Shown piece after piece: positions 1 through 27,407 of a stretch of DNA of 64,000 nucleotides. Where the stretch lies: NCBI GenBank assembly GCA_950097015.1, contig CATNEN010000001.1, positions 8,494,001-8,558,000 on the forward strand, in the 5' to 3' direction. The first letter of the stretch is position 1. Each line of letters opens with the position of its first letter. The translations under genes were made by a program, and so were the position numbers. This DNA comes from Macrostomum hystrix. Taxonomy: Eukaryota > Animalia > Platyhelminthes. The notes beneath the pieces were generated by a model. It saw only the letters and a list, made by a program, of their open reading frames with translations. It was not told the origin of the DNA and did not search any database.

Positions 1-3000
1 TGCGTAGTGTCTGCCGCGGCAGGCACGGTAGCACTTGGCCAGGCTCATGGCTCCGGTGCTGGCTAGAACCGGCAGGTCGCGGCTGCCGTTGTCAACGTAG
101 CATCCGATGAAACGCAGGCCAGGGGCTAGGCAGAGAATTAAGATGAGTTATGACACTGGAGTTAAACTCGATCTGTTTAGCAGAAGACGTCTCGAAATAA
201 GAATAATTTCAGGAAAATTCACTTGGATCAACTGGTCTGGGCAGTCCAGTGGAGAAGACGATGTTTCTCCAGCCAGCGCCGCAGAAGGCGGAGCTGTCAC
301 CGCTGCATCGCATGTTGCACTCGCTGTTGGCCCTGGCACCATAGCGACCGTAGCTATTTCCGCACCAGCACTCGTTGCTGTACTGCAGACCAAAGTAGGC
401 ATAGCGGCGGCGCCTGCACTCGCGATAGCACTTGTAGACACTCATGGATCCGCTGGAGCCCAGTACTGGAAGGTCTCGACTTGCTGAGTCGACAAAGCAG
501 CCGATTCTGCGAAGACCAGGAGCTGGAAGAGAAGCAAGTACCCCCCGATTTTAACGGTAGAACTACCAAGAGGAGTAATTCCCTCCTGACAATGACAGTT
601 TTTGTGCTGCACCCGAACGGAACGGAATAATGCAGGCACACGAAAGTCATGAACACCGGCCAACTTTTCTTTGCGCATCTTCTGAAACAATAATCAAGTA
701 GCCAGCTCTTCAGACCGCTGAGTTATTCAATGCTTCTGGCCGAAAGTCAGATTTTTTCAATAAGCGCTAGTGTATTTTATCCACCCCTAAACACGAAATC
801 GAGCTACACCTCAGTGCGGACTTGCGGGGTTTTGAGAATTTACCAACATGTCACCCGAATGTGCCAGAATCATCTCCGTCTTCGGTGGTCAACGATCTAG
901 ACGGACTGCTGAACCTTTAAGGGCTACAACAGGTGGAACCTATGGACACCTAGGAACCTATGAACCTATGCAACTATGGATACCATTAACATTAATTTCT
1001 CCAATTTCCTTGATCAAGCCTAAATATTTGGCGCAGCTCAACCACAGGACACCCTCGCCAAGTCTGGCAACCAATCAGTCACAACCCTACGCTGTTAGCA
1101 TTCGGGCGCTGTCAAAAAAGTTTCAGGGGGGATTTCCACTCAAAAACTTGATATAAAAACGGGCGGCAAAATAGCTTGGTAGTCCTACGAGTACTATTAA
1201 GCAAGATTCTGTTAAAAACATGAAACTACGAGTAGAAATTAAGCTAACTTTCCATCGACTTCGATACTATAACATTCTCAGACAAAACTGATGCCCACTT
1301 ACTGAGCCTCTCAGCCACACAGATTCGTCGGTTGATTGTTCGGCATCCACAGTCTAAAAACAGAACGAAACATTGAAAATTAATAAAATACGAGTATTGA
1401 GTTCATCAGGTGTTTAAGTTACATATATTGATTAGAATACTTACGTCCTCGCAGAGTATTGTCCAGTGCGTGAGAGTTGGCTGGGAAAGCACTAAAACTC
1501 ATCTTGCCATTAACGGCTCGCTTCACGAACTCCATCAGCTGTTTATAAATGGTTGCAAGCAAAGTTTAATAAAATACGTTTAGCGAGAACTAATCGGCTA
1601 ATCGAAATAACTCAAGAACACACTAAGATCAAGGCTCGGCCCACCTTGTTAAATATTGACGAAGCCAGACGGCTAACTTGTCCATTTGAGTCCCTGGCGA
1701 GCTGGTCAAACTGCTTTGTGCCAACGCCGCACATGTTGCCACTGCCTACGAAGAACAAACGGATATGCTTTGCGTGCAGCTTAGAGGCCACTACGCTACG
1801 CAGGTGTGCGTCCTTCGCAGATGCGTCAGTAAAAAGCATCATGACGGAATTAGGATCTGCAACATCAGCAGCGTCGCGAGCTCCTGACATGGCGAACTCG
1901 GGACAGTCGCCACCGCCGCTGGCGACAAGACGGTCGAGGAATCGCCTGACCTCGGCAGCGTTGGTGGTCTTAAGCACATTTCTAACGTAGGGATCACCGA
2001 AAGTGGCAATCACGTAGTTTTTGAATCGGCGGTTGGACATCAGAATGTTGCGGATATTGTCCTTCACCGACTTAATAACGCGGCCCATGCTACCGGTGGT
2101 GTCGATGACGAAAATCAGAGAGCCGAGGCGCCTCTCCTCAGGGGCCGGCACACAGGAGCAGGTTCGACGACGGATGAACTTCGCCTTGGTTCCAGCCGGG
2201 CATTCTGTGAAAAAATGCGAATTGAAATTAGCCCATTGCACAACTTTGCGAAGACAAGGCGGGAGACAATACTTACTTGACAATGGCTTGCGCACTGGGA
2301 GACCAGTAGTGTAGATGCTGTTTCTCCAGCTCGATCCGCAGAATCTGGACTTGTTGCCGTCGCACCTCATTCTGCACTCGTTGTTCGACCTCCTTCCATA
2401 GCGACCGTAGCTGTTGCCGCACCAGCACTCTCTGCTGTACTGCAGACCAAAGTACGCGTAGCCCCTGGCTCTGCACAGTCGGTAGCACTTGCTGACCTTC
2501 ATGGAGCCAGATCCAGCAAGCACTGGCAGGTCGCGAGTGTTGTTGTCGACGAAGCAGCCGACGAACCTCAGTCCAGGAGCTGAAACGAAATTGGAATGCC
2601 CGACCATCTGTTCGTGAGCTTTTCTCCGTGCCATAATCTTTGCTTTTTCTGTGTCCAGAATGTAATTTAACAATACAATTTCGTAACGTACTGGCTGGCC
2701 TCGGTGTTGGTCTGACGTAGTGTCCGTTGACCTGCACTTCGCACAGAGTCAGTGGGACGTAGTTCCTCGTCTCGATGCGCACGGTTCGTCCGACCAGGTT
2801 GCAGGAGAATGTCCGCACGGAGAAGGCTGTGGATGACCTGTAGGAGGCGCACACACGACCGTCAACCTTGATGACAAAGTCGTTGAGTCGGTCAGCACAA
2901 CAGTCCTGTCGGTTGTGGATGGTGATCGATGTGATTCTGGCCCGTCTGCTGGTCTTTGCCTGCCACCAGGCACCTCTGGCAGTGTTTGTGTGAGTGCAGG

Positions 3001-6000
3001 AGTTGTGGAAGTAGCGCTGATCGGTGTTGCCGTCGATGGCTCTTGAGCAGGGTCCTCCCCAGGCGGTGGAGTGCTGAGAGCAGCCTGACAGAGGCAGCTT
3101 GGCTGGAATATCACAATTTGAGTGATAATCAGTTTTACCAAATACAGTTGCAACCCTTCGTCAGCAAAATGTTTTTAAATGAATGACGACTAGTAGAAAT
3201 GAGGAGAACAAAATACAAAAAAACACAAACTAAAGGTTCAGTAAATAATCAGTTTGTCATTAAGCAAGCACCACAAGGTTTCGTCCAGATTATACGCTCG
3301 TAAGCGAATATGAATCGAAGAATTTGGAAAGAATATTATTAGTAGAAAATGACAAAGGACATAAAAATTTAAACACTACTACATCACAACATTTAATGTA
3401 GGTAGAGACTCAGTGTCTCAAAATATCAACAGCGGCTCACCGTCGGCTGGCCTTCGAACGATAAGACCGGTGGCATAGATGCTGTTTCTCCAGCTCGATC
3501 CGCAGAATCTGGACTTGTTGCCGTCGCACCTCATTCTGCACTCGTTGTTCGACCTCCTTCCGTAGCGACCGTAGCTGTTGCCGCACCAGCACTCTCTGCT
3601 GTACTGCAGACCGAAGTACGCGTAGCCCCTGGCTCTGCACAGTCGGTAGCACTTGCTGACCTTCATGGAGCCAGATCCAGCAAGCACTGGCAGGTCGCGA
3701 GTGTTGTTGTCGACGAAGCAGCCGACGAACCTCAGTCCAGGAGCTGAAACGAAATTGGAATGCCCGACCATCTGTTCGTGAGCTTTTCTCCGTGCCATAA
3801 TCTTTGCTTTTTCTGTGTCCAGAATGTAATTTAACAATACAATTTCGTAACGTACTGGCTGGCCTCGGTGTTGGTCTGACGTAGTGTCCGTTGACCTGCA
3901 CTTCGCACAGAGTCAGTGGGACGTAGTTCCTCGTCTCGATGCGCACGGTTCGTCCGACCAGGTTGCAGGAGAATGTCCGCACGGAGAAGGCTGTGGATGA
4001 CCTGTAGGAGGCGCACACACGACCGTCAACCTTGATGACAAAGTCGTTGAGTCGGTCAGCACAACAGTCCTGTCGGTTGTGGATGGTGATCGATGTGATT
4101 CTGGCCCGTCGGCTGGTCTTTGCCTGCCACCAGGCACCTCTGGCAGTGTTTGTGTGAGTGCAGGAGTTGTGGAAGTAGCGCTGATCGGTGTTGCCGTCGA
4201 TGGCTCTTGAGCAGGGTCCTCCCCAAGCGGTGGAGTGCTGAGAGCAGCGCGACAGAGGCAACTTGGCTGGAATATTGAACAGTTTTTTGTTTTTTAGTCT
4301 TTGGTCTTCAACTTTTAAGTCTAGAGTTACCTTTAGTCGTCCTGCAAAAGAAAAACAGTGAATTGTGCTGACCTGATTCAACTCTGATGCAAGTGTTCCG
4401 GTTGATATATCGGCATCTACATTCTGTGGTATGTTCAACGGTGGTATTTTTGCGATTTACTGTGAAATTTTATTTAGGCTTTAAATAAAGCTTTGAAGCT
4501 CAAGAAGCTTACGTCCTTGCAAGACTCGCTTCAGTGCTGCTGCATCCACTGGGAAGGCGCTGAAGCTGAGTCGTCCATTGGCAGCCCGCTTTACGAATTC
4601 CATTAGCTGTATTGTTTAATTGGGAATATCGATATCAGTATTTCATTATTGTGCTGTATTTATTATATATAATCGAAACTGCAACGCCTGTTTTGATAAC
4701 AGCACTCTTTAAAGCATTCCTAAATATAAAACATTTTATTATTATTAGTTTTTTAAATAAATAATAAATATTTTGATTCGTACAATATAAGCTGCCCTAC
4801 CTTGTTGAAGTGAGCGGAACGCAGGCTAGCAACGTAGCCGCCTGAGCTGCGTGCCAGGGCATCGAACTGTCCAATGCCTCGGCCGCACAGGTTTCCGCTG
4901 GCCACAGCATAGAACCTGATGCCCTTCGCCTTCAGCTTGGCTTCAACTCGACTGCTCAGGTGAGCATCCTTGGCAGAAGCGTCAGTGAACAGCATCATCA
5001 CGGAGTTGGGATCAGCGATATCAGCGGCATCGAGTGCGCCCGACATGGCCATCTCCGGACAGTCGCCGCCTCCAGATGCTCGCAGGCGGTTGAGGAACGC
5101 GACCACCTCGTGGACGTTTGTGGTCTTTTTCAGGTTTCTTTCGTAGGGGTCCCCGAATGTGGCGACGACGTAGTTGTTGAAGCGCGTGTTGGCAGCCAGA
5201 ATCATGCGGATGTTATTCCTCACGGCGTTGATCACGCCGCCCATGCTGCCAGTAATGTCGATGACGAAGACGAGGGAGCCCAGTCTCCTCTCCTCGGGGG
5301 CAGGTGTGCAAGAGCAGGTCCGTCGAGAGATTTTTTTCGGCCGTGTGCCCGCGGGGCATCCTTGGTGTGAATGTGAGAGTTTTGAGCAATAGGATAGGAC
5401 AAAAACCAAAAACTTAAGGTATGCCTGTTTCTGTTAAGGTGAGTTTTTGGAAATACTGAAATTTTCCGATTATTAGGACCAAAGAAAACCTCATGGAAAT
5501 ATAATAATCTGCCAAATGCAGTGAATAAAATGGCTTCCTATTGACCAACAAGCGACGAGCGTATGTACTAACCATTCATCATAAAAGGACGAAAAACGCT
5601 ACACCATACTTCTAAATGAATAAGTCAGCGATAGTTATGAAATCTGTGTTATAAAGGTATACTTACTTAGAGGAGGTCGTCCACCACTGCCACCACTGGC
5701 ACCGCCGTTGCCGCCAACTCGAAGACCGGTGGCGTAGACGCTGTTTCTCCAGCTCGATCCGCAGAATCTGGACTTGTTGCCGTCGCACCTCATGTTGCAC
5801 TCGCCACTGCTTCTGCTGCCATAGCGACCGTAGCTGTTGCCGCACCAGCACTCTCTGCTGTACTGCAGACCGAAGTACGCGTAGCCCCTGGCTCTGCACA
5901 GCTGGTAGCACTTGCTGACCTTCATGGAGCCAGATCCAGCAAGCACTGGCAAGTCGCGAGTGTTGTTGTCAACGAAGCAGCCAATGAACCTCAGTCCTGG

Positions 6001-9000
6001 AGTTGCTGCATTTTTAGGGCTTAGCTAAAACGGTGCTTGTTCAAATTGCAAAAACGTGTAAAATAAAAATGGACTTACGTTTTCTAGCAGCAACACATGT
6101 GCGTCGATTGATGTTACGACACCCACAATCTGAAAAATTATAAAATAAATTTTCATGCGTTTTCTTTACTCAGCTATCAAGTAAGTTCCATTAGCAGGAA
6201 TAGCTATTAAAAACTCCAAGAAAACCAAATACCACTCACGTCCACGAAGAACACGATTCAAAGCGTGAGCGTTGGCGGGGAAAGCGCTGAAGGTCAGGCG
6301 GCCGTTTGCAGCGCGTTTCACGAACTCCATCAGCTGGGGAATAAGGAAGACCCATCGCTAAAGTGAGCAACTCAGCATGATTTAACATTATTATCTAGCT
6401 GCAACCCGTTAATATGCTTTCTTGGACAGTAGGAAACTAAATCTTAAACGGAAATTCACGACACTATTCAGATGTTTACGACAAAAACATGTAGCAATGC
6501 TTAGAGGTCCCTTCAGGTGGTACTTGACAGGGCGGTCAATTTGTTTGCCTCTCGCACCAAGGTTCCTGAGCTCGATTCCGGGCGAGGCCACATTTATTTG
6601 GGGCGCAGCCGCGGAGAGAAGGCTTGGGGGCTTGTCGTGCAATTTACGCCCTTAAAGGCCAACCTCTAAGGCACAGTGAGAGTGTACACTGCCTGACGAT
6701 GAGAAAGTCAGGGCAGCTGTACACACCTGTACGAGCGTTTGCCTGCGTACAGTATCTGTGTGCGTATCTGTGTGCTCAGAAGTCAGCGAAATGGGCCAAA
6801 TTGCCTCCTCGCTGGCTGCGGGTCTAGTCTCACAAAATGACGCGCCATTGCCCGAAGCCCTCCTGCAAATATTATTATAAGAGTTGCCCTACCTTGTTGA
6901 AGTGAGCGGAGCGCAGGCTAGCAACGTAGCCGCCTGAGCTGCGTGCCAGGACTCCGAACTGTCCAGTGCCTCGGCCGCACAAGTTTCCGCTGGCCACAGC
7001 ATAGAACCTGATGCCCTTCGCCTTCAGCTTGGCTTCAACTCGACTGCTCAGGTGAGCATCCTTGGCAGAAGCGTCAGTGAACAGCATCATCACGGAGTTG
7101 GGATCAGCGATATCAGCGGCATCGAGTGCGCCCGACATGGCCATCTCCGGACAGTCGCCGCCTCCAGATGCTCGCAGGCGGTTGAGGAACGCGACCACCT
7201 CGTGGACGTTTGTGGTCTTTTTCAGGTTTCTTTCGTAGGGGTCCCCGAATGTGGCGACGACGTAGTTGTTGAAGCGCGTGTTGGCAGCCAGAATCATGCG
7301 GATGTTGTTCCTCACGGCGTTGATCACGCTGCCCATGCTGCCAGTAATGTCGATGACGAAGACGAGGGAGCCCAGTCTCCTCTCCTCGGGGGCAGGTGTG
7401 CAAGAGCAGGTGTGCCGAGAGATCCATTTTGCTCTGGTGCCAGATGGACAAGACAACGAGCCGGCTGAATGGGAGAGAAGCGAAAACATGGGAATGTTTT
7501 GCAAATTAACTTATTATCCAATGTAGGTTCTGATTTCACGCAAACATGAAATTTTCGTGTTTTTGTGATTACTATCTTACACCTAAATCGAATAGGAACG
7601 AACTTAACAAAAATAAAATTACTTGGTGGACGAGGTGGCCTATATCCGCCGCCAACCCGCAGTCCGGTGGTGTAGATGCTGTTTCTCCAGCTCGATCCGC
7701 AGAATCGCGAGCGGTTGCCGTCGCATCTCATTCTGCACTCGCCGTTCGACCTGCTGCCATAGCGACCGTAGCTGTTGCCGCACCAGCACTCTCTGCTGTA
7801 CTGCAGACCGAAGTACGCGTAGCCCCTGGCTCTGCACAGCTGGTAGCACTTGCTGGCTCTCATGCCACCGGTTCCTGCCAACACTGGTAGGTCACGCGAG
7901 CTGTTGTCGATGAAGCAGCCAATGTATCTCATACCTGGGGCTGTTGTATTGAGAGGGAAGTCTTCAAGTCGCTGTCCAAGGACTATCAGGACCTTACTGA
8001 AGCGATTTTATCTTTATGATAATTACGCGACTATCTCAAACTAATTCGTATTTATACTAGTAGTGTCCCTAAGTAGTCATTAGTTCGTTTTTAGGTCGTT
8101 TTTTATCCGCAGTTCTTAATAAAAACCGATTTAGGAAGAGCATCTGAAAGTTAAAATCTTACTTCGAGGTCGTCGTCCGCCAACCCGCAGTCCGGTGGTG
8201 TAGATGCTGTTTCTCCAGCTCGATCCGCAGAATCGTGAGCGGTTGCCGTCGCATCTCATTCTGCACTCGCCGTTCGACCTGCTGCCATAGCGACCGTAGC
8301 TGTTGCCGCACCAGCACTCTCTGCTGTACTGCAGACCGAAGTACGCGTAGCCCCTGGCTCTGCACAGCTGGTAGCACTTGCTGGCTCTCATGCCACCGGT
8401 TCCTGCCAACACTGGCAGGTCACGCGAGCTGTTGTCGATGAAGCAGCCAATGTACCGCATACCTGGTGCTGTTTTTCGTCAGATACCATTGGAAAGTGCA
8501 GATTATTCATAGGGTTTGAATACTTCTTTCTTTGAAACATGGATCTCCTTAACTTACTCCTTTGCCTGCGGCTTGGGCTGGGTCTGGTCCAGACGCGCCT
8601 TCTGCGTCGGCCCCATCGTCGGATTGTCCTGTGAACCTTTCGAGCGGCTCGCCTAACCGGTCGTGACCACCGCCGGACATGACGTCGTACAGGTCTGGAC
8701 CAGCGACGAACATGCCGGACATGACGTCGTACAGGTCTGGACCAACGACGAACATGCCGGACATGACGTCGTACAGGTCTGGACCAGCGACGAACATGCC
8801 GGACATGACGTCGTACAGGTCTGGACCAACGACGAACATGTCGCCGAACAGGGCTGGTCCATCGCCTCCTGCCCCAACGGGCGTCAGCTAAAATGAATAA
8901 ATCAATAGAATAGACTATTTTAATCGCTGATGAAGGAATCGCCTTTGAGTATTTTATCGTCTTTAGTACTTTGTCTTTTCGTCTAATAACTTTGAATCTT

Positions 9001-9070
9001 TCGAAAGCTTACCCATCGTCAGAGCGCAGACGAAGCAGACCGCCAGAAGCAACCAGGCGATCTTGCCCAT
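1..9070 (-). CDS. Secreted mosaic lectin/adhesion-like protein (3' end outside window): SP - Arg/Trp/His repeat - WSC - WSC - vWA - Cys linker - WSC - vWA - FTP - WSC - FTP - WSC - vWA - Cys linker - WSC - WSC(partial)
   Basis: Phase-consistent GT-AG exons derived manually: 9070-9013, 8887-8558, 8468-8163, 7940-7623, 7464-6893, 6333-6240, 6129-6079, 6005-5667, 5360-4801, 4606-4513, 4266-3856, 3743-3441, 3102-2692, 2579-2277, 2204-1645, 1538-1445, 1353-1303, 522-223, 125-1. N-terminus MGKIAWLLLAVCFVCALTMADA is a typical signal peptide. WSC motif GCFxD...C..C...Y.YFGLQY..ECWCGN...C...C.G....CG. vWA with D[TI]TGSM, GGGDCPE and FTDA. F-type lectin with AIDGN and H-x26-R-x-D-x4-R. Confidence 0.9.
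2692..3102 (-). CDS. F-type (fucolectin/FTP) lectin domain exon, copy 2
   Basis: Near-identical copy of 3856-4266 at an offset of 1164 bp, with the same splice sites. Confidence 0.9.
3856..4266 (-). CDS. F-type (fucolectin/FTP) lectin domain exon, copy 1
   Basis: CSQHSTAWGGPCSRAIDGN...CTHT...WW...NRQDCCADRL...LTLCEVQV. Exactly 26 residues separate His and Arg of the fucose-binding motif. Confidence 0.9.
6508..6878 (+). mobile_element. tRNA-derived SINE, family A (intronic copy)
   Basis: Degenerate tRNA-like head with B-box-like gagctcgattcc (6568-6579). Body shared with 19438-19668 and 34340-34610. (ATT)n-like tail. Confidence 0.7.
6893..7464 (-). CDS. Hemicentin/VWA7-type vWA domain exon (further copies at 4801-5360 and 1645-2204)
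   Basis: LVFVIDITGSM, FGDP, GGGDCPEMAM, FTDASAKD and SSGG motifs match the hemicentin N-terminal vWA pattern. Each copy is completed by a 94-bp exon beginning LMEFVKRA. Confidence 0.85.
8558..8887 (-). CDS. Exon 2 of the mosaic gene: polycationic Arg/Trp/His-rich repeat segment
   Basis: Acceptor ttttag at 8889-8888, donor gtaagt at 8557. Phase 1-1, in frame with exon 1 and the WSC exon at 8468. Translation: ADARWGRRRWTSPVRR(HVRRWSRPVRRHVR)x4RWSRPVRRAARKVHRTIRRWGRRRRRVWTRPSPSRRQR. This frame has no start codon and is missing from the ORF track. Confidence 0.85.
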
Positions 9071-9204
9071 GACTGCAAGTCAGAAGTATACGCTAATCTG
9101 CTTCTAGAATAGATCTTGTAGCGTCAAGCAAATTCTCCTCAATCAACCGCAGCTGAATAAGGAGGATCCCGAGTTGGCCTCGGTAGCGCCGGAACACCGG
9201 TCCG

Positions 9205-9210
9205 TTTATA
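9205..9210 (-). promoter_or_regulatory. Candidate TATA box of the mosaic gene
   Basis: TATAAA on the minus strand about 135 bp upstream of the ATG at 9070, in a GC-richer proximal region. Confidence 0.4.
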
Positions 9211-11337
9211 TCGACATGCAGTCGGTTGGGATCTGCTGACAGAAGCGGAGGCCTGGGCGGGGGTTGCCAGGCTGTTGTCTTCTCGCATAGCATCGGTGCG
9301 CCGTGTCAGCTTTGAGGCTCCGTTTCGCATCTGGTGCTCAGCGACACACCGTCCTTCCCCCACCCCACCCTAGCTTGGGCGAGAGCAGGCAGGACCAAAG
9401 TGAGAAAAAACATTAAATCGATGGTTGGAATTTGCCAGTTTTTTTACTAAAAAAATTCTTTTTGTAAAATGTTGAAAGTATTCGACGCTCGACTAAACCA
9501 TGCGAGAAATTCAATAGGAGCTGTACTGCCTTTCAAGTAGGAGAAGTCGACGCTTAGTCGCCAAGTCCTGCTTTCGGTTGACTCGCTGCTTATCGGAGGG
9601 CGAGGAGCCGAGGTTGCTGGGCTGGGAGGTGAGGGTGTGGGCGACAAGGCTTCTTCCTTGTGCCTATAACAGGCATACAATAGCCCCAATAGAGAGGCTC
9701 CGAATGTCTCGCTAAACACATGGCAGCTCATTGCCCTCACAATATCCCATTATCCCAGCCAAAGCCTCGGAGCCAAGTTGAGATCGAAGATCTCAGTCAA
9801 TCCAGCGCACCTCTCCACCACTAAGAACCGGTTTGAACCAGTTCTTCTTGCTCTTTCCTCCTGCTAGCAAGCAAGCGCAGTATGCAGTCAGATTTGCTGT
9901 CTTCTCGGCCTGAGGTGAAGAGCTACAAAGCAAACAATAGATCTTTTCCCGTCGCATCATCTGCCATCTGTCGCAGGAACTGCTCTATCGAAACTGTTTG
10001 CCTCTGAAAGTTTTTTTGGCCTCTCCCAGTGAAAGCAGAAGGCTAATAACTACACTGTGTCATTGTGGTCTGACACGAAGCACTGAATTTCTGAGCAAAT
10101 TTTGGAAAATTAAAAAAGAAAAATAAGCTAAAAATAGAATGCTCATTCATTATTTGCAATCTCGATGCTGATATGTTAATAGCGTCTAGGAAAAGAGAAC
10201 GGCACTGTATTCTTTTTGTTTGTTTATTTTTAATCGAACGCAACAAGTTGTACAATTGTACAGGTCAGTGCTTACTTATCGATCCAAGGCAGATAATACT
10301 CAAAGCAGACAGCAAAAGGATGCTCAGAAAAGTAATCAATAGGAAAAAGTTTCAAATAAAAACAACGAATTCAAGAGAAAGAGGCGACATGTCTTAAGAA
10401 AAACAACTGGAAAAAAACTTGAAATTGTTGTGTCAAAATTAAGCTGGGTCTTGGTAGATCGGAAGATGCGAAAACTAATTATGTAACGAGTTAAAAAGAT
10501 GCAAGTCATAAATGATGACATGATGAATTGTTCTTGAAATTGCGTTTCCAAATTTGAACTCAACTTAACACGACAGAAGGACGGAAATGTATAATTAATT
10601 AGCTTTATTTGTAACTTTAATAAGTAAAATTGAGGAGTCAAAGACTATTTGGATAAAAAGTTTGTGTTTTTTAGTCATAATTAAAATGCACTTATAAAAT
10701 AAGTTCAACAGTCAAACTATTAAATAAAAGTTCAATGGCACAAATTATTTAAATAGATTTCGTTTGCATTCAAAACTGACAAAGACCTAACAACCTAGAA
10801 GTGCTTATAGTTAAACAAAAAATAAGCACTTAATAATTCATGTCTTTGTACTAAATTAATTGTTGTTCAAAAATACCGAAATAATTAAACTTAAAATAAG
10901 TTGGAATGCTTAAAAGAGTGTTTCTAATTCATGTAGAACAACACTTTATTAGCTACCATTGAAACAGTTTAAAAATATGTAAAAGCCAATAAAATGGTTA
11001 AACTGTGTAGAGAAATTTGAACTACATTAAAAGTTGATCATGATAGGAAAAATTAAGGGAATTAAATAATTAAAATGAGTTCAGTGAGTTAACATCTAAG
11101 TGCCCGGCACAAACAATAGATTGACTGAAAAGTTTTACAGATTATCTGCATTATGATACTACTCGTACATTAACAAGCATAAAAGCTGTTAGCATATAAA
11201 TAAATACCCGATGAAAACGATTCTACATGACTTTAAAAAGTCATTAGAGAAAGCGTGAGTCATTAGAAAAAAATTTGAGCCAATAGAATAGTTTTTGAGT
11301 CATTTTGAGTAGGATTTGAGTCATTAGAGAAGTGTTG

Positions 11338-12571: not shown

Positions 12572-15500
12572 TCAATGCACGCCCATCAGATTAATGCTGG
12601 AGCCGGATGACCGTCTGATAATGTCACGCTTCAAGTGTTTGTGCAGTCTAGAGGACAATTTGTGCAACGTCTTGGCAGCTTTGACAGCGTCTGTCAGATC
12701 TAGCTGCGATTGAGTCCGGCCGACGGGATAATAGTCCGGCTGTGGGAAAAGTTTTCAGGGTAAATCTGCTGTTAGGAATTAGGCATAAATTTAACACATT
12801 CCTTTTAGGATAAAATTAATAGAGGCTTATGACTTCTACGTAGATATCGATAATGACTTCAGGGTAGATCGTGACTTCAGGGTAGCTAATGACTTCAGGA
12901 TAGCTAATGACTTCAGGGTAGATAATGACTTCAGGGTAGATAATGACTTCAGGGTAGCTAATGACTTCAGGGTAGCTAATGACTTCAGGGTAGCTAATGA
13001 CTTCAGGGTAGCTAATGACTTTAGGGTAGCTAATGACTTCAGGGTAGCTAATGACTTTAGGGTAGCTAATGACTTCAGGGAAGATCGTGACTTCAGTGTG
13101 AAGAATAACTTCAGGGTAGATCGTGGCTTCATGGTAGATAATAACTTCAGATCGTGACTTCAGGGTAGCTAATGACTTCAGGGAGATAATGACTTCAGTG
13201 TAGACAATAACTTAAGGGTAGATCGTGACTTCAGGTAGATAGCGACTTCAGGGTTAGATAGTGACTTCAGGGTAAATAAAGATAATTAATACTGGGCAGA
13301 CTTCAGGACTTCAGGCCAGTGAGTTTAAACCAACCTGAAATCCACCGCTACTGGCATAACCAACGCCGCTGTCAGCTTCGTAGATGTAAAACTCCTGCGT
13401 AGGCTGCGGCGGCGGCGGCGGCTGAGGAGGAAGACCGTAACCAACTCTACCGTAGGCCCTCCTCCGACCATTGCTGGCTGCAAGAGAGCTGACGCTGGCA
13501 ACACGGCGAAGCGACGAAGCGTCAGCTGGACCAGTCTCGGTCACAATGTAGCGTCGGAGCGGCTGCGGCGGTTCTACGTTGTACACGCGCTCCCTAGGAG
13601 GAGCAAAGCTGTTAAAAAGGAATATGATTAAATAGTAGTAGACAAATCAGCTGAGCCCTGAGCTCACACTCACACTGGGGTGTAAAGCTGATCTGACTTT
13701 CTTATCATCAAGCTTGGGGATCAGAATCTGATGTACACAAGCTTTGGGATCAGAATCTGATGTACACAAGCTTTGAGATTACAATCTGATGTACACAAGC
13801 TTTGGGATCAGAATCTGATGTACACAAGCTTTGGGATCAGAATCTGATGTACACAAGCTTTGGGATCAGAATCTGATGTACACAAGCTTTGGGATCAGAA
13901 TCTGATGTACACAAGCTTTGGGATCAGAATCTGATGTACACAAGATTTGAGATTACAATCTGATGTACACAAGCTTTGGGATCAGAATCTGATGTACACA
14001 AGCTTTGGGATCAGAATCTGATGTACACAAGCTTTGGGATCAGAATCTGATGTACACAAGCTTTGGGATCACAATCTGATGTACACAAGCTTTGGGATCA
14101 GAATCTGATGTACACAAGCTTTGGGATCAGAATCTGATGTACACAAGCTTTGGGATCAGAATCTGATGTACACAAGCTTTGGGATCAGAATCTGATGTAC
14201 ACAAGCTTTGGGATCACATTCTGATGTACACAAGCTTTGGGATCAGAATCTGATGTACACAAGCTTGGGGATCAGAATCTGATGTACACAAGCTTTGGGA
14301 TCAGAATCTGATGTACACAAGCTTTGGGATCAGAATCTGATGTACACAAGCTTTGGGATCAGAATCTGATGTACACAAGCTTTGGGATCACATTCTGATG
14401 TACACAAGCTTTGGGATCAGAATCTGATGTACACAAGCTTGGGGATCAGAATCTGATGTACACAAGCTTTGGGATCAGAATCTGATGTACACAAGCTTTG
14501 GGATCACAATCTGATGTACACAAGCTTTGGGATCACAATCTGATGTACACAAGCTTTGGGATCACATTCTGATGTACACAAGCTTTGGGATCACAATCTG
14601 CAATTTGGGATCGAATTTGGCACCAAAAGAATGTGGCCTCGCCGCGGATTCGAGCTCGGGTGCACCTTTCGTGTCTGTTACCTACAACTGATTTAGAGAA
14701 AATAAATAAAAAGAACTCACCCAGCCACGTGAGTTCTAAGGCCGTGCACAGCACGCATTGGACCAACTTTGGGATATCTGCAAGTCAGCAGGATTAGGCA
14801 AGCGAAATACTGTTAGCTCGCTAAGTTAACTTTGTTACAGGCTACCAACAAGCAAAAGTCTAAATTAGAAGGTTAAATTGTAAAGTTTGATCTAGAAGCA
14901 TGGCTTAAAGCCTAGTGGTTTGAGAGTCGGACTCACGACTTGGAGGTCGGGGGTTCGATTCCCGACTCCACTGGAAACTCTTAACTCTGCATTGCTCCAG
15001 TTCAGCCAGTTGTTAAATGGGTACCAGCATTAGCTGGCGTAATTGAGGGTGGGTGTGGCTTCCCCCCAGTCCATGGACTGAACAGCCGTACGCAGCCTTC
15101 AGATGCGCCGCGCAATAGCTGCGGTTGTTGGGGCAGGTGTAATCAATCAATAATCTAATTATCTAAAAAATGTAACAAAGGCGTGTCAAAATGTATCGTT
15201 ACTTCTTAGAGCGTTAATTTAAAAGCTTCAACGCTAGTTAATCGTTACTTTTTCAACGAGTCTAATTAGGACGCCAAATGAATGTTAGCATTTGTTGTTA
15301 AAACAAGCGACATTTTTTGTGATCACCAGTCTAGGTCACTCACCTTCCGAAACCGCCACCGACATGCTGCTGCTGCCGCTGCTGATACGGATAAGCCGGC
15401 GGCGGCGGTCTTGCAGAGCCAGCTGCCAGACAGGCCGACCGTCTGTGCGGCGTGCCCGGCTCGGCGCCGCATCCGGCGCAGACTCGATTCTCGAAGCTCA

Positions 15501-18500
15501 CTGGCCGGCCGCGATTTCGCCTCTCCGGCACTTTGCGCCAAGCTCGAGACCGCCCACCGTCGCTGGGTTTATTAGCCGCATCCCCAGCTGCTCCGCCGCG
15601 GAAGCGCATACCGGCTGCGCGTGGACTGGCGTCTCTGGGATGACGCTTGGGATAGAATGAGTACTCGCTGTACTCAAACTCCGGCCAATTGTCGTCATCG
15701 TCAAAATCTTCGTCTTCGTCAATATCCAGATCGTCGTCATCCGACTGGTAATCGTCTTCGGAGTCGTCGCCAAATCGTCGACGTCCGCGACGAAGAATGC
15801 CGGCCGAAGGGCTGGCTGCGGACACTGGCGACGGTCTGGCGGCGTTCGGATTCAGCCGTCGACTATCTCGATGATTGGCGCCAGGTCTAGAACGCTGTTG
15901 ACGACCGTTTTCATAGAAAGCAGAGTCATCATTATCAGTATTGCTGTGGCCTCTCCTAGTAGCGGCTGTTCTGTCTGGACTCTGGTACTCTTCCTCGTCA
16001 GAATAATAGTAATCGTCTTCGAGTGGATAGCGCCGAACTAGGCGACCTTCGCGATCGTATTCCTCTGTGAATGGAGGCTGTCTTGGTCTAGACCTACGAT
16101 TCTGCTGCTGCTGCTGCTGCCGATCTTTCGAACGCGCCTGAGAATTCGGCTGCTCATCGCGCCTAGCTGTGCTGGGACGTCGTAAATTTTCGCTACTTAA
16201 AATCGACGCGGCGTCGTCCGGAGTGGCTCCGGCGGCGACCGCTGCGGCCGCGGCCGCTTCAGCTTCAATCTCGGTGTCCAACTGATCTCGCAGCCAACGA
16301 ATGTCCTGTTCAAGATCGTGATATTCGTGATCAGCTGCATCCTTCTTTGTGTGCTGCTGCTGAGAGGCGGCCGAAATGCCGCCATTCAGTGTTGAAGCCA
16401 CAGAAGCCACGCCGCCAACAGCCACACCAGAGCCAACATCCGTGTCCGTATTCCGACTCAATCGTCTGCCAGCAACCGTGGACGAAGCGGCGGACATCAT
16501 CTCGTCTAGCGGACTGCCTCGCTGGCGTCGCTGATGCTGTTGAAGCAGGAGCTGCGAGGAGTGCCTCCGACCTCCGCCAGCGCTGGTAGCGAATCCGCTG
16601 TCATTCTCAGAGAGTGCGCCGGCGCCCAAGCCAGCATTCTGATTTAACGAAGATGCAGATTTAGCAGGCGAATAATGAGCCTTGCCATCGCCTGCGCCCG
16701 ACACCGCAGCCGACTGCGCCGGATTCAGCGGCATTCGTCGGGTACCACCGGCGCTGGCTCCGGATCCTCTAGGCGAGCCGGCACTAGCCAGTGCGGCCAG
16801 TTCAGCTTCCAGCTGAGCCGCCGTGCCAATCAGTCGACTACGACCGGCACTTTCGGCAACAATTCGGCGAAGTTCGCCAACTAGACGATCCAGTTCGCGT
16901 CTGGATGTTCCGCCACCTAACGAAGAAGCCGCCGTTGTTGTGCCAGTTGACGTTGGCGAATCGATTAGATCGACGCCTCGTCCGCCTCCGCCACCAGTAA
17001 CGCTGCTATTGGACTGTTTCAAATGACGATACTGACCCATGAGGTCTAGATAGAGTTCCTCGAGCTGAGCGAGCCTGTGCTCCGAACTCAATGCGGATTC
17101 GCCAATGGAAGCCGGATCTGTTGCAGTGGCTGCTGTGGCTGTTGACAGCTGAGTACCAGCCGCTGCGCTTGATCGGCGACGATCAAATGACGGATCGCGA
17201 AACGGCGTACGACGCTTCTGGCCACTTTGGCGAGCGTTTTCCGTCACCTGGTTTTAGGATGAAAATGATGGGTGACAGGTTGTTGCCAAGCAGCTAGGAG
17301 CTAGCTGATTTTGGGATCAGAATCTCATTGTAGCTTTGGGATCAGAATCTCATTGTAGCTTTGGGATCAGAATCCCATTGTAGCTTTGGGATCAGAATCT
17401 CATTGTAGCTTTGGGATCAGAATCTCATTGTAGCTTTGGGATCAGAATCTCATTGTAGCTTTGGGATCAGAATCTCATTGTAGCTTTGGGATCAGAATCC
17501 CATTGTAGCTTTGGGATCAGAATCTCATTGTAGCTTTGGGATCAGAATCTCATTGTAGCTTTGGGATCAGAATCTCATTGTAGCTTTGGGATCAGAATCT
17601 CATTGTAGCTTTGGGATCAGAATCTCATTGTAGCTTTGGGATCAGAATCTCATTGTAGCTTTGGGATCAGAATCCCATTGTAGCTTTGGGATCAGAATCT
17701 CATTGTAGCTTTGGGATCAGAATCTCATTGTAGCTTTGGGATCAGAATCTGTTTAACAGAAGCTTTGGGAACAATGTCGATATAACTCTGGGATGAGAAT
17801 CTGATGCGGCTTTATAAACTCAAGTGCAAGACATTGTCACTGACCTGCTCGTCCAGCTCATCTAGTCGCATGCTCAACTGAAACAGCTCTCCCTCCAACT
17901 GCTCGACGTCAACGCCGCCGAATTCATCTTCGTCATCCTCGTCTTCGTCTCCCTCGCCGCCGCCAACAATCCGGTTAGCGAATTCTTTCTGCAATTGGTC
18001 GAATGCTTGACGCAGTTCCGCCCGGAGCTGCTCCTGCTCCTCCACTGGCAGAGTGGCCAGATTGGCGCTGTCCAGGCGTCTGGAAAAGCAAATTATAAGG
18101 AGTTTTATTCAAATTCCAACTAGCCTACTCACAGTAGGATAGTAAACAAATCACGATTGAACTAACTTATGCAAGGCTTGAATTTTGCGCAACAACTGGC
18201 CCTTCTTGCCGCCGATTAGGGCGCCACCGCCTAATAGGCGGGGATCGAACCCGCGACCTCCAACACCAGCGCCGCCGCGCCTAGCCAGTTTGTTGGCAAC
18301 AACGGAGGGCGAAGCCGGGAGAGACGAAGTCTGACGCATAGCTGCGGCCTGGGCTTGCTGCTGCTGCTGCTGCTGATGTTGTGCGTCAGTCATAGCAGAT
18401 CTGGCCCTCTGCTGCTGCTGCTGCTGTTGCTGGGTTAGGCCGAATTGCTGTTGCTGCTGATTGATAACGCGCTGATGGCGAGCGAGTCTTTGATGCTGCT

Positions 18501-21296
18501 GCGGAGACGGAGTGTTGTAAGCCTGAGTGCCGGCGCCAACGTAGCCGCCGCTAGCCGACCATCTTGAAGCTCTACCGACGCTGCTGTTCTCGCCGTGTTG
18601 CAAATTCACCCTGGCGCCAAGGCGCAACTGATCGATGGTGACCTCGGCCAGGGCGTGCTTGGTCAATAATCGGTCATAGTCGGATTGCAACTGCTGCAGA
18701 ACACTCTCCTGCTGCTGGCGAAGGGTCTCTTCACGCCTGAGCCGCTGCTTCAGCTGAATGTCATCCTGGGTGCCGGCCGCGGCCACGGAAGACACGCCGT
18801 CGCCGGATGCTGTTGAAGAAGACGAACGCGGGATTCGAACTCGCGACGACTGTTGCTGCTGCTGCTGCTGCTGAGTAGATTGAGGACGAGACGGCTGCTT
18901 TGGAGGTGTAGAGGAAACTGGGACGGCAGTTCCTGTAGTCGAAGATGAAGCTGTCGAGGCGGCTGCGGCCGTGACAGACGACGATTTTCGACTGCGTCGA
19001 TCTTTAGCAATGATTGGCTTCTGCTGGCGCTGCTGCTGCTGCTTCTGCTGAGGATATTGCGAATAGACTGATGTGCCAGAATAGACCGGGGCAGATTCTA
19101 GGGCGCTGTTTACCTGAAAGTTTAAAATTAAACATTTATTATTCACTTATCTACTTAAGTAAGTAGTGAGATTTGCTAGCAAAATGAAACTATTAGCGCC
19201 AAACTATTTATTGATTTATTCGATTCACGAGCTTCTAAAACTTACTAAGGAGGTCTGAAGTTCGAATCCTTGAGTAACATATTCGATCCCGCATTGATTT
19301 AGTTCAACCAGCTGTAAAACGGGAACCAGCAGAAAGATCATTTCAAATACCCGCTGCCTACTTCGCGACAGCTCCCAAACCGAACCCTTTCCGCCCTTCA
19401 CGATGAACTAACTTTCGAAGCCGTCCGAGAGGGTCAGCTGGGGGGTCAGTGGCAGAGCGGTCTAACGCGTTTGCCTCTCGTACCAAGGTCCCTGAGCTCA
19501 ATTCCGCAGCGAGGCGGAGATGAGAAAGTCAGGACAGATGTACACACCTGTGTGAGCGTGTGTGCTCAGGAGTCAGCGAAATGGGCAGAATTGCCTCCTC
19601 GCTGGCTGCGGGTCTAGTGTCATCAAATGATGTGCCATTGCCCGCAGCCCTCCTGCAATTATTATTATCAATACGCCTTCCGAGACAGCATTGTCGAGTT
19701 ATTCAGCAATTCTTGTCGGCGGCCCTGGTGACGAGGACAACTAGCATGGCCCTGAATAACCCTCTAAGGCGAATCCATATGAAAAAATTATTAATTTAAT
19801 TTATCTAAAACAGTCAACAATGTTAGCCGACATGGGCGCATGATGAAATTTTGCGAGACCTCGACAAGAATCGTTGAACAACTCGACGATGCCAATTGTT
19901 CTGGATTGTTTAAGTGGTTTCGCCGGAAAAAAGGTGGAAACTTTTAGCCCTGTCTTCTAGATTTTCATGGCGATTGGTTAATTATTTTAGGAGATGAAGA
20001 AAAAAGAGAAATGTGGGTATTTTTCGTGGAGTTTCTACTGTGTCACAAAATGTCTCACCTGATCATGCAGCTCAATAGGATCATAGTCAGCTTCGGGCGG
20101 ATCGTGCTTAGTATTGACATCGATTAGTTCACCCTCCTCTTCGGCTCTGGCGATGGCTTCGGCTCTGGCGGCGGCTTCGGCCAGAGCGGCAGCCGGATCG
20201 TCGACATATTCAATGAGCATGTCGCCAGTTTCAAAGTCCATCAGGGCGGTCACCTGGGAGACTTCGTAGTCGGCGCTATCCCTGCGATGAGCGAGCTGGT
20301 TAAGCTGCTGCTGCTGCTGCGGCGATGGCAGCGCTCTAGTCAGCTCGTTCATGGTGCCCTGCTGAGTATGATTGGCCCCAGAGGCGGACGATGAAGCAAC
20401 AGGCGGCGGCAACATTCGACTATAATCGGCCTGAGATTTTTGAGCCTCCTGCAGATAGTCGTCTAGAAGGGCGGCTTCCGCATCATCGTCTAGATCGACG
20501 TCTTGAAGAAATGACCGACTACTACTGGCCGCACCGACCGAAGATGGCGCTGATGTCCACGGATGCTGCTGACTGTCAGCTGACTCATGCTGCTGCTGCT
20601 GCTGATTTCTGTGATGTCTGCGACCTCTGCGCAGTTGCTGCCTACCTTCGCTGTTTGGCTCTGCGTCGTCGTCATAATTTTCTTCGAAATCACCTTCGTA
20701 ATAATAGTTACTATTATTATTCGTTTGATTTCCAGCCTGTTGATTGGAATTACGACCGTTTCCATTCCGTGATTGATTCCAGAGTTCGCCGGCGCTAACA
20801 GAATGTTCTAGCCTATTGCTGCCACTGCTGGCTCGATGCTGTTGTTGTTGTTGCACAATTTCTGGCTCCTCGTCTGTGGTAAACGGATGGAGTTACATAA
20901 ATATATTTGCTCTGCACAACTCATTAAGTACAAACTCCTACTAGCCTGCCGTTGTTATCGGGTGTCACTCCTGTGGCTTATCATGTGTCACTCCTGTGGC
21001 TTATCAGGTGTCACTCCTGTGGCTTATCAGGTGTCACTCCTGTGGCTTATCTGGTGTCACTCCTGTGGCTTATCTGGTGTCACTCCTGTGGCTAATCTGG
21101 TGTCACTCCTGTGGCTTATCTGGTGTCACTCCTGTGGCTTATCTGGTGTCACTCCTATGGCTTATCAGGTGTCACTCGCTGTTTATAGTTGTAACCAATC
21201 ATCACAACACTCACCATGAACTATCTGGTGTCCATGCTCATCGATTTCAAAGTCCAAATCGAATTCATAGGTTGGACTTGATTGACTCTGCATCAT
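12572..21296 (-). CDS. AKNA: AKNA-domain protein (AKNA/AKNAD1 family), low-complexity Q/A/G-rich
   Basis: Exons 21296-21215, 20873-20059, 19113-18167, 18079-17845, 17247-15344, 14777-14721, 13608-13335, 12739-12572, all phase-consistent. YDRLLTKHALAEVTIDQLRLGARVNL matches the AKNA domain. Also LEGELFQLSMRLDEL, a CAGCG CxxC motif and a C-terminal helix LTDAVKAAKTLHKLSSRL. Confidence 0.75.
12850..13275. repeat. 18-bp minisatellite (AGGGTAGCTAATGACTTC) in the last AKNA intron
   Basis: Visible tandem array; explains the spurious LKSLAT ORF. Confidence 0.93.
13708..14600. repeat. 29-bp minisatellite (TCTGATGTACACAAGCTTTGGGATCAGAA), about 30 copies
   Basis: Visible tandem array filling intron 13609-14720. 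Confidence 0.96.
14900..15150 (+). mobile_element. tRNA-derived SINE, family B (CORE-SINE-like)
   Basis: B box GGTTCGATTCCC at 14952-14963. CORE-like segment cttaactctgcattgctccagttcagccagttgttaaatgggtacc. (AATC)n tail. Related fragments at 19245-19331 (+) and 35029-35061 (-). Confidence 0.65.
17310..17750. repeat. 25-bp minisatellite (TTTGGGATCAGAATCTCATTGTAGC), about 17 copies
   Basis: Visible tandem array in intron 17248-17844. Confidence 0.95.
19245..19331 (+). mobile_element. Degenerate SINE family B fragment
   Basis: gttcgaatcc B box plus gcattgatttagttcaaccagctgtaaaacgggaaccagc, similar to 14985-15029. Confidence 0.5.
19438..19668 (+). mobile_element. tRNA-derived SINE, family A (internally shorter copy)
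   Basis: A box TGGCAGAGCGG at 19450-19460, B-box-like gagctcaattcc at 19494-19505, body shared with the 6508 copy, attattattat tail. Confidence 0.72.
20962..21177. repeat. 23-bp minisatellite (GTGTCACTCCTGTGGCTTATCTG)
   Basis: About 9 copies in the first AKNA coding intron. Confidence 0.92.
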
Positions 21297-26753: not shown

Positions 26754-27407
26754 TCAGCCAGACCGCATCGTCTGTTCCATCATGGCCAACAATCTGGCAG
26801 TTTCATGTTTCAATAAGCGCAGCCTCTGCTCGCTGGCCTCAAATTCCACCAGCTCAACTGGAGGGGCAGTTTTGTCAGGCTCAACTAACCCGGAAGCAAC
26901 GCCCAGTTTTAGGCGAACCTGAGCAGTCGATCGCTGACCAGTCTGCTGCGGCAGCATCAATCGCAAACTCCAAGCTAAAGAAGCCAGTCGAGATAATCTC
27001 AACTCTTTGGCATTGGCGTACTCAACTAGAGCAGTACCAGCATCTGTATAGACCCGGACAATCTGTCCCGCGTGCTCCTTTGGCAGGCCCAATTGTTGCA
27101 GCTCATCGCCTAGTGTTTCTGGGCTAGCTGAATATTTACTAGCCGATGTAAATAGATGCGTCAGGGCCGATATTAATGCCTGGTTATCGCGTTCGGTGAA
27201 TTTAGCATCAGCTGTGTGCTTAGCAACCGCTGCTAATAGAGCGGCGTCGCTGTCTGGACTGTTGCTAGGCGCGGTGGAACTAGGCAAAGCTTTGACTAGA
27301 GCTGAACAGACCAGGCGCAGTTTAACAACTGACAGTTTTGACATGGCAAACACTTCAGCTAGTAACCAGTCTGGACAGTCCAGATCGCCGAAGATGCGAA
27401 ACTTCAT
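26754..27407 (-). CDS. COMMD4: COMM domain-containing protein 4 (no intron in CDS)
   Basis: Diagnostic N-terminus MKFRIFGDLDCPDWLLAEV...SVVKLR, ELQQLGLPKEH, and C-terminal COMM domain (LRLSRLASLAW). Confidence 0.93.
   Translation of the reverse strand: MKFRIFGDLDCPDWLLAEVFAMSKLSVVKLRLVCSALVKALPSSTAPSNSPDSDAALLAAVAKHTADAKFTERDNQALISALTHLFTSASKYSASPETLGDELQQLGLPKEHAGQIVRVYTDAGTALVEYANAKELRLSRLASLAWSLRLMLPQQTGQRSTAQVRLKLGVASGLVEPDKTAPPVELVEFEASEQRLRLLKHETARLLAMMEQTMRSG

Follow-up and report, generated by a model that had tools for sequence, protein, structure and literature searches.

A large minus-strand gene of Macrostomum hystrix predicted to encode a secreted, polycationic mosaic of WSC, vWA and F-type lectin modules

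Gene structure, transcription and modules

The window analysed here is a stretch of 64,000 nucleotides of Macrostomum hystrix DNA (G000:C1:8494001-8558000 of a 220-Mb genome). Its minus strand carries, from 1 to 9164, the 5' part (roughly the first third) of one spliced and transcribed gene, in which a predicted signal peptide and an Arg-rich head precede WSC, vWA and F-type lectin modules. The gene leaves the window: the exon series was traced in the adjoining DNA for ~15.5 kb more, with 29 further exons after exon 20 and a stop codon at about window coordinate -15560 (G000:C1:8478440).

Transcript evidence is provided by assembled contigs from public RNA data (two studies, three organisms), which were aligned to 3401-9400. 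The joints between exons listed in Table 1 are of the GT..AG type on the minus strand. The contigs connect exons 1-10 (9164 to 4606) as well as exons 12-13, they cross the introns at 99-100% identity, and exons 1-9 form a single open frame when joined. The first 13 exons belong to one gene, which is transcribed and spliced. A loose contig end at 4264 was considered as the sign of an extra exon and rejected: the contig derives from a paralogue at ~-31336/-33388, and the true acceptor of exon 12 therefore lies at 4266.

The complete model comprises 49 exons with GT-AG at all introns, no internal stops and a coding sequence of 14,061 nt, and nearly all of its exons are of phase 1-1. Most modules occupy one exon each. 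WSC and F-type lectin domains are encoded by single exons (411 nt for the lectins), and each vWA module is assembled from three exons of 560-572, 94, and 51 nt. An earlier note on this DNA, made from its letters, had named RNA junction support as a check; such support is present for exons 1-10 and 12-13, while the exons below 3441 (36 exons, the downstream two thirds of the gene) were placed by GT-AG sites and homology only. We infer that these 36 exons belong to the same gene. The 49-exon model is supported by two M. lignano proteins, since the 94-nt vWA exon (exon 6) is colinear with residues 461-491 of A0A1I8JEL7 (P0006) and the final exon stops exactly at the end of BOX15_Mlig032017g1 (P0030). 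Moreover, every exon can be assigned to signal peptide, head, WSC, vWA, linker, or lectin.

Highly repeated exons are known to confuse assemblers, and some RNA contigs are indeed chimeric between paralogous WSC exons (joints 3493/8293 and 3594/5965, both devoid of GT-AG ends). It is nevertheless scarcely credible that, instead of one functional gene, the stretch represents a pseudogene, a run of separate genes taken for one, or an assembly that is collapsed or chimeric: the frame runs uninterrupted for 14 kb over 49 exons, contigs of 99-100% identity cross true introns, 32 of the 32 WSC exons keep their 8 Cys, and the unrelated introns between near-identical exons identify the copies as distinct loci. 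For the first 13 exons, we reject a pseudogene or an assembly artefact.

The predicted protein has 4,686 residues, a mass of ~518 kDa, a pI of 9.4, 314 Cys, and a net charge of ~+320. It is composed of 32 WSC, 4 vWA, and 3 F-type lectin domains, i.e. 39 Cys-rich modules. The signal peptide is the sole hydrophobic stretch of the whole model, which has no membrane segment. Counted per 500 residues, net charge starts at +78 at the N-terminus and declines to +15 close to the C-terminus, with an acidic last exon. All sequence searches were made exon by exon, and the joined sequence served for the frame check and composition alone.

Table 1. Features of the gene and of its surroundings, in window coordinates. 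Negative numbers lie beyond the window edge; joints between exons are written as donor/acceptor.
Feature	Position	Strand	Evidence and remarks
TATAAA box	9205..9210	-	Read from the sequence; ~40 nt upstream of first transcribed base seen; putative promoter element
Exon 1: 5' untranslated region 9164-9071 (no upstream ATG), ATG 9070, 19-residue signal peptide, ends in phase 1	9013..9164	-	X5/X6 RNA contigs
Exon 2: Arg/Trp/His-rich head, 330 nt, phase 1-1	8558..8887	-	RNA joints 9013/8887, 8558/8468; frame check
Tandem repeat in exon 2, 42 bp x 4.0, 97% matches	8672..8840		Tandem Repeats Finder
Exon 3: WSC domain 1, 8 Cys, 17 Arg	8163..8468	-	Pfam E 8e-20; joints 8558/8468, 8163/7940; Kremen1 WSC (5fww) E 2e-7
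Exon 4: WSC domain 2, 98% protein identity to WSC1	7623..7940	-	Pfam; RNA joints
Exon 5: vWA module 1, main part	6893..7464	-	Pfam VWA_4 E 6e-33; joints 7623/7464, 6893/6333
Exon 6: vWA module 1, C-terminal 31 residues	6240..6333	-	RNA joints; colinear with P0006
Exon 7: 17-residue Cys linker (CGCRNINRRTC)	6079..6129	-	Joints 6240/6129, 6079/6005
Exon 8: WSC domain 3	5667..6005	-	Pfam E 3e-21; joint 5667/5360 in X1 contig
Exon 9: vWA module 2, main part, 96% protein identity to module 1	4801..5360	-	Pfam; joint 4801/4606
Exon 10: vWA module 2, C-terminal part	4513..4606	-	Acceptor in RNA; donor predicted (GT, likeness to exon 6)
Exon 11: putative Cys linker, 51 nt	4373..4423	-	AG/GT sites and likeness to exon 7; no RNA joint
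Exon 12: F-type lectin domain 1	3856..4266	-	Pfam F5_F8_type_C_2; FBP32 E 2e-23; joint 3856/3743; start 4266 from AG
Exon 13: WSC domain 4	3441..3743	-	Pfam; acceptor in RNA; donor predicted
Exon 14: F-type lectin domain 2, 99% identical to domain 1	2692..3102	-	Pfam; repeats; boundaries predicted
Exon 15: WSC domain 5	2277..2579	-	Pfam; boundaries predicted
Exon 16: vWA module 3, main part	1645..2204	-	Pfam VWA_4 E 1e-35; boundaries predicted
Exon 17: vWA module 3, C-terminal part	1445..1538	-	Predicted
Exon 18: Cys linker	1303..1353	-	Predicted
Exon 19: WSC domain 6	223..522	-	Pfam E 1e-20; boundaries predicted
Exon 20: WSC domain 7, cut by window edge, runs on to -174	1..125	-	Pfam; neighbouring DNA L011, L009
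Near-identical exon pairs	8468-8163 with 7940-7623; 7464-6893 with 5360-4801; outside the window -6930 to -10823		DNA identity 94-98%
Gene B, nearest tandem paralogue, ~30 kb downstream	G000:C1:8449000-8464400 (~-29500 to -45000)	-
~355-bp interspersed repeat in intron 5, outside the gene product	6525..6880		RNA depth up to 4,700

Exon 1 encodes MGKIAWLLLAVCFVCALTM from its ATG, with 19 hydrophobic residues after the initiator codon. The adjoining head contains 47 Arg, 9 Trp, and 9 His among 111 residues, which amounts to a net charge of +47, and holds four near-identical 14-residue units (RRWSRPVRRHVRHV). As the 42-bp repeat that overlaps the head is open in all three frames, the reading frame of the head rests on splice phase rather than on the length of the open frame: only the Arg-rich frame of exon 2 keeps signal peptide and WSC1 in one open frame. 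Further, 25 R-x-x-R sites, 19 RR pairs, and two R-x-[KR]-R sites are found in the head. The head exon occurs as one DNA copy in the genome, where matches at the protein level are simple repeats only (e.g. L015). No usable neighbour of the head was found in the ESM Atlas, no relative among 5.8 billion proteins of 60-190 residues, and the Arg-rich stretch is found in none of the fetched M. lignano proteins.

The seven WSC domains of the window match PF01822 with E-values of 1e-19 to 1e-21. Six of them are complete and score 69-76 bits against a Pfam gathering cut-off of 27.8; the seventh runs past the window edge. The in-window WSC exons contain 12-17 Arg per ~100 residues (8 in the edge-cut last one), and the lectin exons contain 16-17 Arg per 136 residues.

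Against solved F-type lectins, the lectin exon matches striped bass FBP32 (3cqo) with an E-value of 2e-23, Sm-hPAF with 2e-16, and eel agglutinin AAA (1k12) with 6e-16. The motif of this fold is His ... Arg-x-Asp-x4-Arg/Lys, accompanied by the calcium motif h2DGx (PMC5712786). In our gene, the predicted fucose motif is kept as AIDGN followed by H...RQDCCADR (RQDCCAGR in the third lectin domain), which corresponds column by column to H...RGDCCPER in FBP32. The spacing is also that of FBP32, with 26 residues counted in both where the review writes X24. Judged from the alignment, the lectin modules keep the predicted fucose-binding His/Arg/Arg positions and the calcium motif, which, like the domain itself, they have in common with eel agglutinin and FBP32.

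The three vWA domains in the window match VWA_4 (PF25106) with E-values of 6e-33 to 1e-35. This is their best profile with 114-123 bits, compared to 38 bits for VWA_2 and 29 bits for VWA. The vWA exon found nothing significant among PDB sequences, neither singly nor as a profile; the fold was therefore checked by a structure model and Foldseek. The AlphaFold 2 (AF2) model, built from a 10-sequence alignment, has a predicted local distance difference test score (pLDDT) of 80 and shows alternating strands and helices. Foldseek relates it to ITIH1, the integrin beta I-like domain, CMG2/TEM8, and alpha2delta with a probability of 1.0 and template modelling (TM) scores of 0.6-0.66. In the model, a set of residues like that of a metal ion-dependent adhesion site (MIDAS) is formed by D38-I-T40-G-S42, with which strand 1 ends, GGGD103 in the loop ahead of helix 108-118, and T129-D130, where strand 124-129 ends. 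Compared with the canonical MIDAS (DxSxS, Thr, Asp), Thr takes the place of the first Ser and Asp that of the usual Thr.

The earlier note had proposed most of these elements. Its counts (at least seven WSC, three vWA, and two F-type lectin domains) are reproduced by the Pfam scan on the minus strand of 1-8478, and its signal peptide and polycationic Arg-rich head are borne out by the RNA joints on both sides of exon 2 together with the frame check. Likewise, its description of the WSC and lectin modules as themselves Arg-rich agrees with the Arg counts given above, the MIDAS-like vWA site that it mentions has a non-canonical counterpart (D-x-T-x-S, GGGD, TD), and the gene does run off the window as it had stated.

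Relatives, paralogues and duplications

A search of the WSC5-vWA3 frame against 1.8 billion representatives returned 9,345 matches, the best of which are uncharacterised proteins of M. lignano. Exon by exon, the identity to M. lignano amounts to 77% for lectin, 70-75% for WSC, 58-70% for vWA, and 61% for the last exon (53-77% overall). The best match for every module type is found among A0A1I8J1D5 (P0004), A0A1I8J2B5 (P0015), A0A1I8JE00 (P0001), and the above-mentioned P0006 and P0030. These sequences resemble our gene in their alternating WSC/F-type lectin units and in their cationic character. In contrast to our gene, they are uncharacterised fragments of 212-1,155 residues, which never have WSC and vWA in one model, lack the Arg-rich head, and are rich in Lys rather than Arg.

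WSC and vWA occur together in none of the 165 fetched proteins, while WSC and F-type lectin domains are combined in 4 of them: two M. lignano fragments, an Amoebophrya protein, and an amphioxus protein of 5,602 residues. A second search, limited to proteins of 171-544 residues, yielded no combination of WSC with VWA_4, and no retrieved database protein unites WSC, vWA, and F-type lectin. In the literature, we found no paper that joins WSC with flatworms, or WSC with F-type lectins and von Willebrand domains. The earlier note had recognised no named family in this architecture, and neither our database nor our literature searches turned one up. The WSC/vWA/F-type lectin design with an Arg head appears to be undescribed, its distinctive features being the F-type lectin modules and the orphan head within a giant, cationic, WSC-based family. 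The gene is a member of such a family and not a one-off, since it has sister genes as well as relatives among the M. lignano fragments.

Each module type can also be compared with better known proteins. F-type lectins have 1-5 lectin domains, alone or together with pentraxin, C-lectin, or CCP domains (PMC5712786); unlike the protein described here, none has been described with WSC or vWA arrays. Kremen1 and the multi-WSC proteins of fungi, protists, and molluscs have the same 8-Cys WSC domain, and long arrays are known, such as the 23 WSC domains of a Diplonema protein; yet they come without the vWA and F-type lectin combination and without the head. The amphioxus protein (Branchiostoma LOC144864360, XP_078580859.1, P0142), which is uncharacterised, is likewise a giant mosaic, in which local hidden Markov models find 36 WSC-like and 5 F-type lectin-like domains. 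No vWA domain was detected in it by these models, identity is ~31%, and the likeness may reflect descent or convergence.

The vWA modules are of the same subtype (VWA_4, PF25106) as those of hemicentin and VWA7, and their nearest relatives outside Macrostomum (34-40% identity) are annotated as hemicentin or VWA7 and carry PF25106. In hemicentin (fibulin-6), the vWA domain is followed by a long array of Ig domains, by EGF repeats, and by a C-terminal module of the fibulin type. In Pfam scans of the open frames in window 1-9749, we found WSC, vWA, and lectin families only, and no Ig, EGF, or fibulin-type modules. Moreover, hemicentin has one N-terminal vWA domain, whereas our gene has four vWA modules, whose MIDAS reads D-x-T-x-S with GGGD. 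As all 49 exons are otherwise accounted for, we reject membership in the hemicentin family. The common vWA subtype, as well as the very large size and modular build of the protein, would also fit a structural extracellular-matrix or basement-membrane protein like hemicentin or VWA7 instead of a gland secretion. We regard this as very improbable, since the domains typical of such proteins are missing from the scans, the extreme positive charge and the WSC/lectin content suit a glycan binder better, and the family has expanded in tandem clusters and evolves fast, unlike conserved matrix genes.

F-type lectin exons number at least 134 in the genome and are mostly arranged in tandem clusters (contigs C1, C2, C3, C7, and C39), and ~49 VWA_4 exons are likewise spread over several clusters; WSC exons occur in many of its unrelated genes. 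For an animal with a genome of 220 Mb, at least 134 F-type lectin exons is a large expansion.

Within the gene, WSC1/WSC2, vWA1/vWA2, lectin1/lectin2, and WSC4/WSC5 are 94-99% identical in DNA. In the lectin-WSC unit alone, the duplication took in the intron (1,164-bp spacing); the introns around the other near-identical exon pairs align at only 53-72% in a forced global alignment. Further downstream, a super-repeat of four WSC domains recurs about three times, and identity is again confined to the exons. This pattern suggests either that gene conversion was restricted to the exons or that strong selection extends to silent sites. The gene thereby offers a compact case of module-by-module growth, in which exon shuffling, gene conversion, and exon birth can be tested across Macrostomum genomes.

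The nearest tandem paralogue, gene B, is also transcribed, as an RNA contig joins its WSC and lectin exons. It has WSC exons of phase 1-1, two vWA modules of the VWA_4 type, and F-type lectin exons with 90% identity to those of our gene; three of its lectin exons are identical in score and coordinates at a spacing of 2,052 bp. Its product, too, is predicted to be cationic and secreted. Its signal-peptide exon (MANRAWLVLATCLFYAVLQ) is similar to that of our gene and is followed by a 70-nt intron and then by WSC, without the Arg/Trp/His head exon. Between the two genes, antisense WSC-like exon sequence is found at G000:C1 ~8472000-8474600 (-19400 to -21900), in open frames that read WSC exons in reverse.

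Since the signal-peptide exon of gene B leads straight to WSC, the head exon was either gained in our gene or lost in gene B. We tentatively suggest, as a possibility that we hold to be rather unlikely, that the head is a young, lineage-specific coding exon, born in intron 1 after the duplication that gave rise to gene B and grown by the 42-bp minisatellite, and that it provides a functional polycationic Arg/Trp/His module, either as a polyanion anchor or as a source of released antimicrobial-type peptides. If so, the head would clearly exemplify how the de novo birth of an exon adds a functional module to a secreted protein.

Proposed function

The gene encodes a giant, Cys-rich, polycationic protein which is probably secreted from gland cells and would serve as a multivalent binder of glycans. 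The architecture points to a glycan binder that is multivalent and extracellular, because a signal peptide without any membrane anchor is combined with 39 Cys-rich modules and with positive charge concentrated towards the N-terminus. The earlier note had likewise read one gene for a predicted secreted, strongly cationic, multivalent WSC/vWA/F-type lectin mosaic, and RNA joints, Pfam matches, and charge are in line with it.

In the mechanism that we propose, a gland cell would cleave the signal peptide and release the protein as a multivalent cross-linker, with the modules as independently folding units strung after the orphan Arg/Trp/His head. Dozens of weak glycan sites in the WSC and F-type lectin modules, together with metal-dependent contacts of the vWA modules, would confer avidity. 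Through its positive charge, which is steepest in the N-terminal part and culminates in the head, the protein would attach to polyanions, among them sulfated or acidic glycans and mucins as well as the surfaces of microbes or sperm. It could then gel, glue, or coat whatever bears those ligands. An agglutinating, mucus, glue, or defence role may be envisaged.

An analogy in mechanism is offered by the adhesive system of M. lignano. There, regions extremely rich in Lys/Arg occur beside lectin and further interaction domains in Mlig-ap1, the cohesive adhesive protein, and heparin-type polyanions block attachment (PMC6410801). Mlig-ap1 contains vWD-C8-TIL, C-type lectin, and EGF domains, Mlig-ap2 contains vWD/TIL/LDLa/TSP1 domains and 46 long repeats, and both are products of adhesive gland cells (PMC6410801). 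The likeness to the protein described here would be one of mechanism only, in that each of these very large, Cys-rich proteins, secreted or predicted to be so, couples polycationic regions to domains for carbohydrate and protein binding. By contrast, the domain sets are wholly different, the Lys/Arg (KR) regions of the adhesive proteins exceed 3,600 residues, and there is no homology. Membership in the Mlig-ap1/ap2 group is rejected, given that Pfam scans of window 1-9749 reveal no vWD-C8-TIL, C-type lectin, EGF, LDLa, or TSP1 domain; the difference from the vWD/C8/TIL-type flatworm adhesives, which the earlier note had pointed out, is confirmed by comparing these scans with the published domain list (PMC6410801).

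If the proposed role is correct, the protein would be one of several very large, polycationic, multi-lectin secretions that form a family in Macrostomum, a genus used in the laboratory to study bioadhesion, regeneration, and sexual conflict. The protein would add a second chemistry beside the glue of Mlig-ap1/ap2, with WSC/F-type lectin/vWA domains in place of vWD/C8/TIL, and would supply natural modules for testing charge and lectin avidity in reversible underwater gels. The parts of the protein are all known domains.

Several points weigh against a polycationic, glycan-binding secretion. WSC domains in animals are not known to have a uniform, proven ligand. Metal-dependent binding by the vWA modules is uncertain, because their MIDAS is non-canonical (DxTxS, Asp in place of Thr). 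The head lies within a young minisatellite and could be functionally neutral, and an in-frame isoform without it is possible, as the head exon is of phase 1-1. Additionally, assembled contigs cannot show expression level, full-length molecules, or the absence of isoforms, and the exons below 3441 are without RNA support here.

The same protein might instead be a reproductive secretion, made in the prostate (seminal fluid), the shell gland, or the cement gland, which would coat sperm, eggs, or the antrum of the partner and evolve fast under sexual selection. In M. lignano, many of the putative seminal-fluid transcripts limited to the prostate code for WSC proteins, and small WSC proteins predominate among the prostate-limited transcripts (Table S1 of PMC5977470; Mlig-pro46, PMC6953679; RNA815_80.4, PMC4490696); F-type lectins act in fertilisation too (PMC12221842). 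Our gene moreover has a lineage-specific head, exons that are almost identical, and internal duplications of very recent date, all of which are common in reproductive proteins. Yet the prostate WSC transcripts are short (0.7-1.4 kb; PMC5977470) and were not reported to have vWA or lectin domains. WSC exons occur in many unrelated genes of the genome, and nothing ties this gene to any gland. We consider a reproductive secretion a serious but less likely alternative. A tissue assignment from the prostate literature was rejected, as those transcripts are short and their orthology is not established; they serve as a lead only.

Head and lectins together would also suit an innate-defence agglutinin, whose head would be a tandem antimicrobial-peptide precursor from which proprotein convertases free Arg/Trp-rich 14-mers, while the lectins bind microbial glycans. 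The four near-identical Arg/Trp/His units, the numerous R-x-x-R sites and RR pairs, and the many F-type lectin exons of the genome are compatible with this, and F-type lectins are classical immune recognition molecules (PMC5712786). At 43% Arg, the R-x-x-R sites are, however, expected by chance, and the stricter R-x-[KR]-R motif occurs only twice. In tandem antimicrobial-peptide precursors, repeated mature peptides are set apart by defined processing sites and are released. The head displays no visible spacer or processing architecture and no likeness to a known peptide family, and it is present in one gene only, which makes such a precursor distinctly unlikely. A gland-secreted, multivalent glycan binder is our preferred reading of the gene.

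Repeats and other features of the window

RNA depth peaks at 6401-7000, where we found no Rfam family and no tRNA. The spike is explained by the ~355-bp interspersed repeat in intron 5 (Table 1), which looks like an unclassified short interspersed nuclear element (SINE)-like sequence. More than 2,000 candidate copies of it occur at 87-91% identity, with similar pieces at ~-4930, -6330, -14900, and -21900. A second interspersed repeat of ~640 bp (551-1188) resides in the intron between exons 18 and 19 and has 1,745 candidate copies at 73-82% identity.

Between 11256 and 62009, minisatellites are unusually abundant in the window: there are at least 18 arrays, whose units measure 14-46 bp and are repeated up to 96 times. 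Two of these arrays are the strongly C-rich 36099-38218 (22 bp x 96) and the G-rich 48203-49550 (15 bp x 88). The extremes of GC skew in the composition profile are due to such arrays.

Three long open frames (635, 331, and 273 residues) on the minus strand of 15340-20856 have no Pfam match. Further along the window, a COMMD-type gene is located at 26754-27407 and an ERG4/ERG24 sterol-reductase-type exon at 60870-62135.

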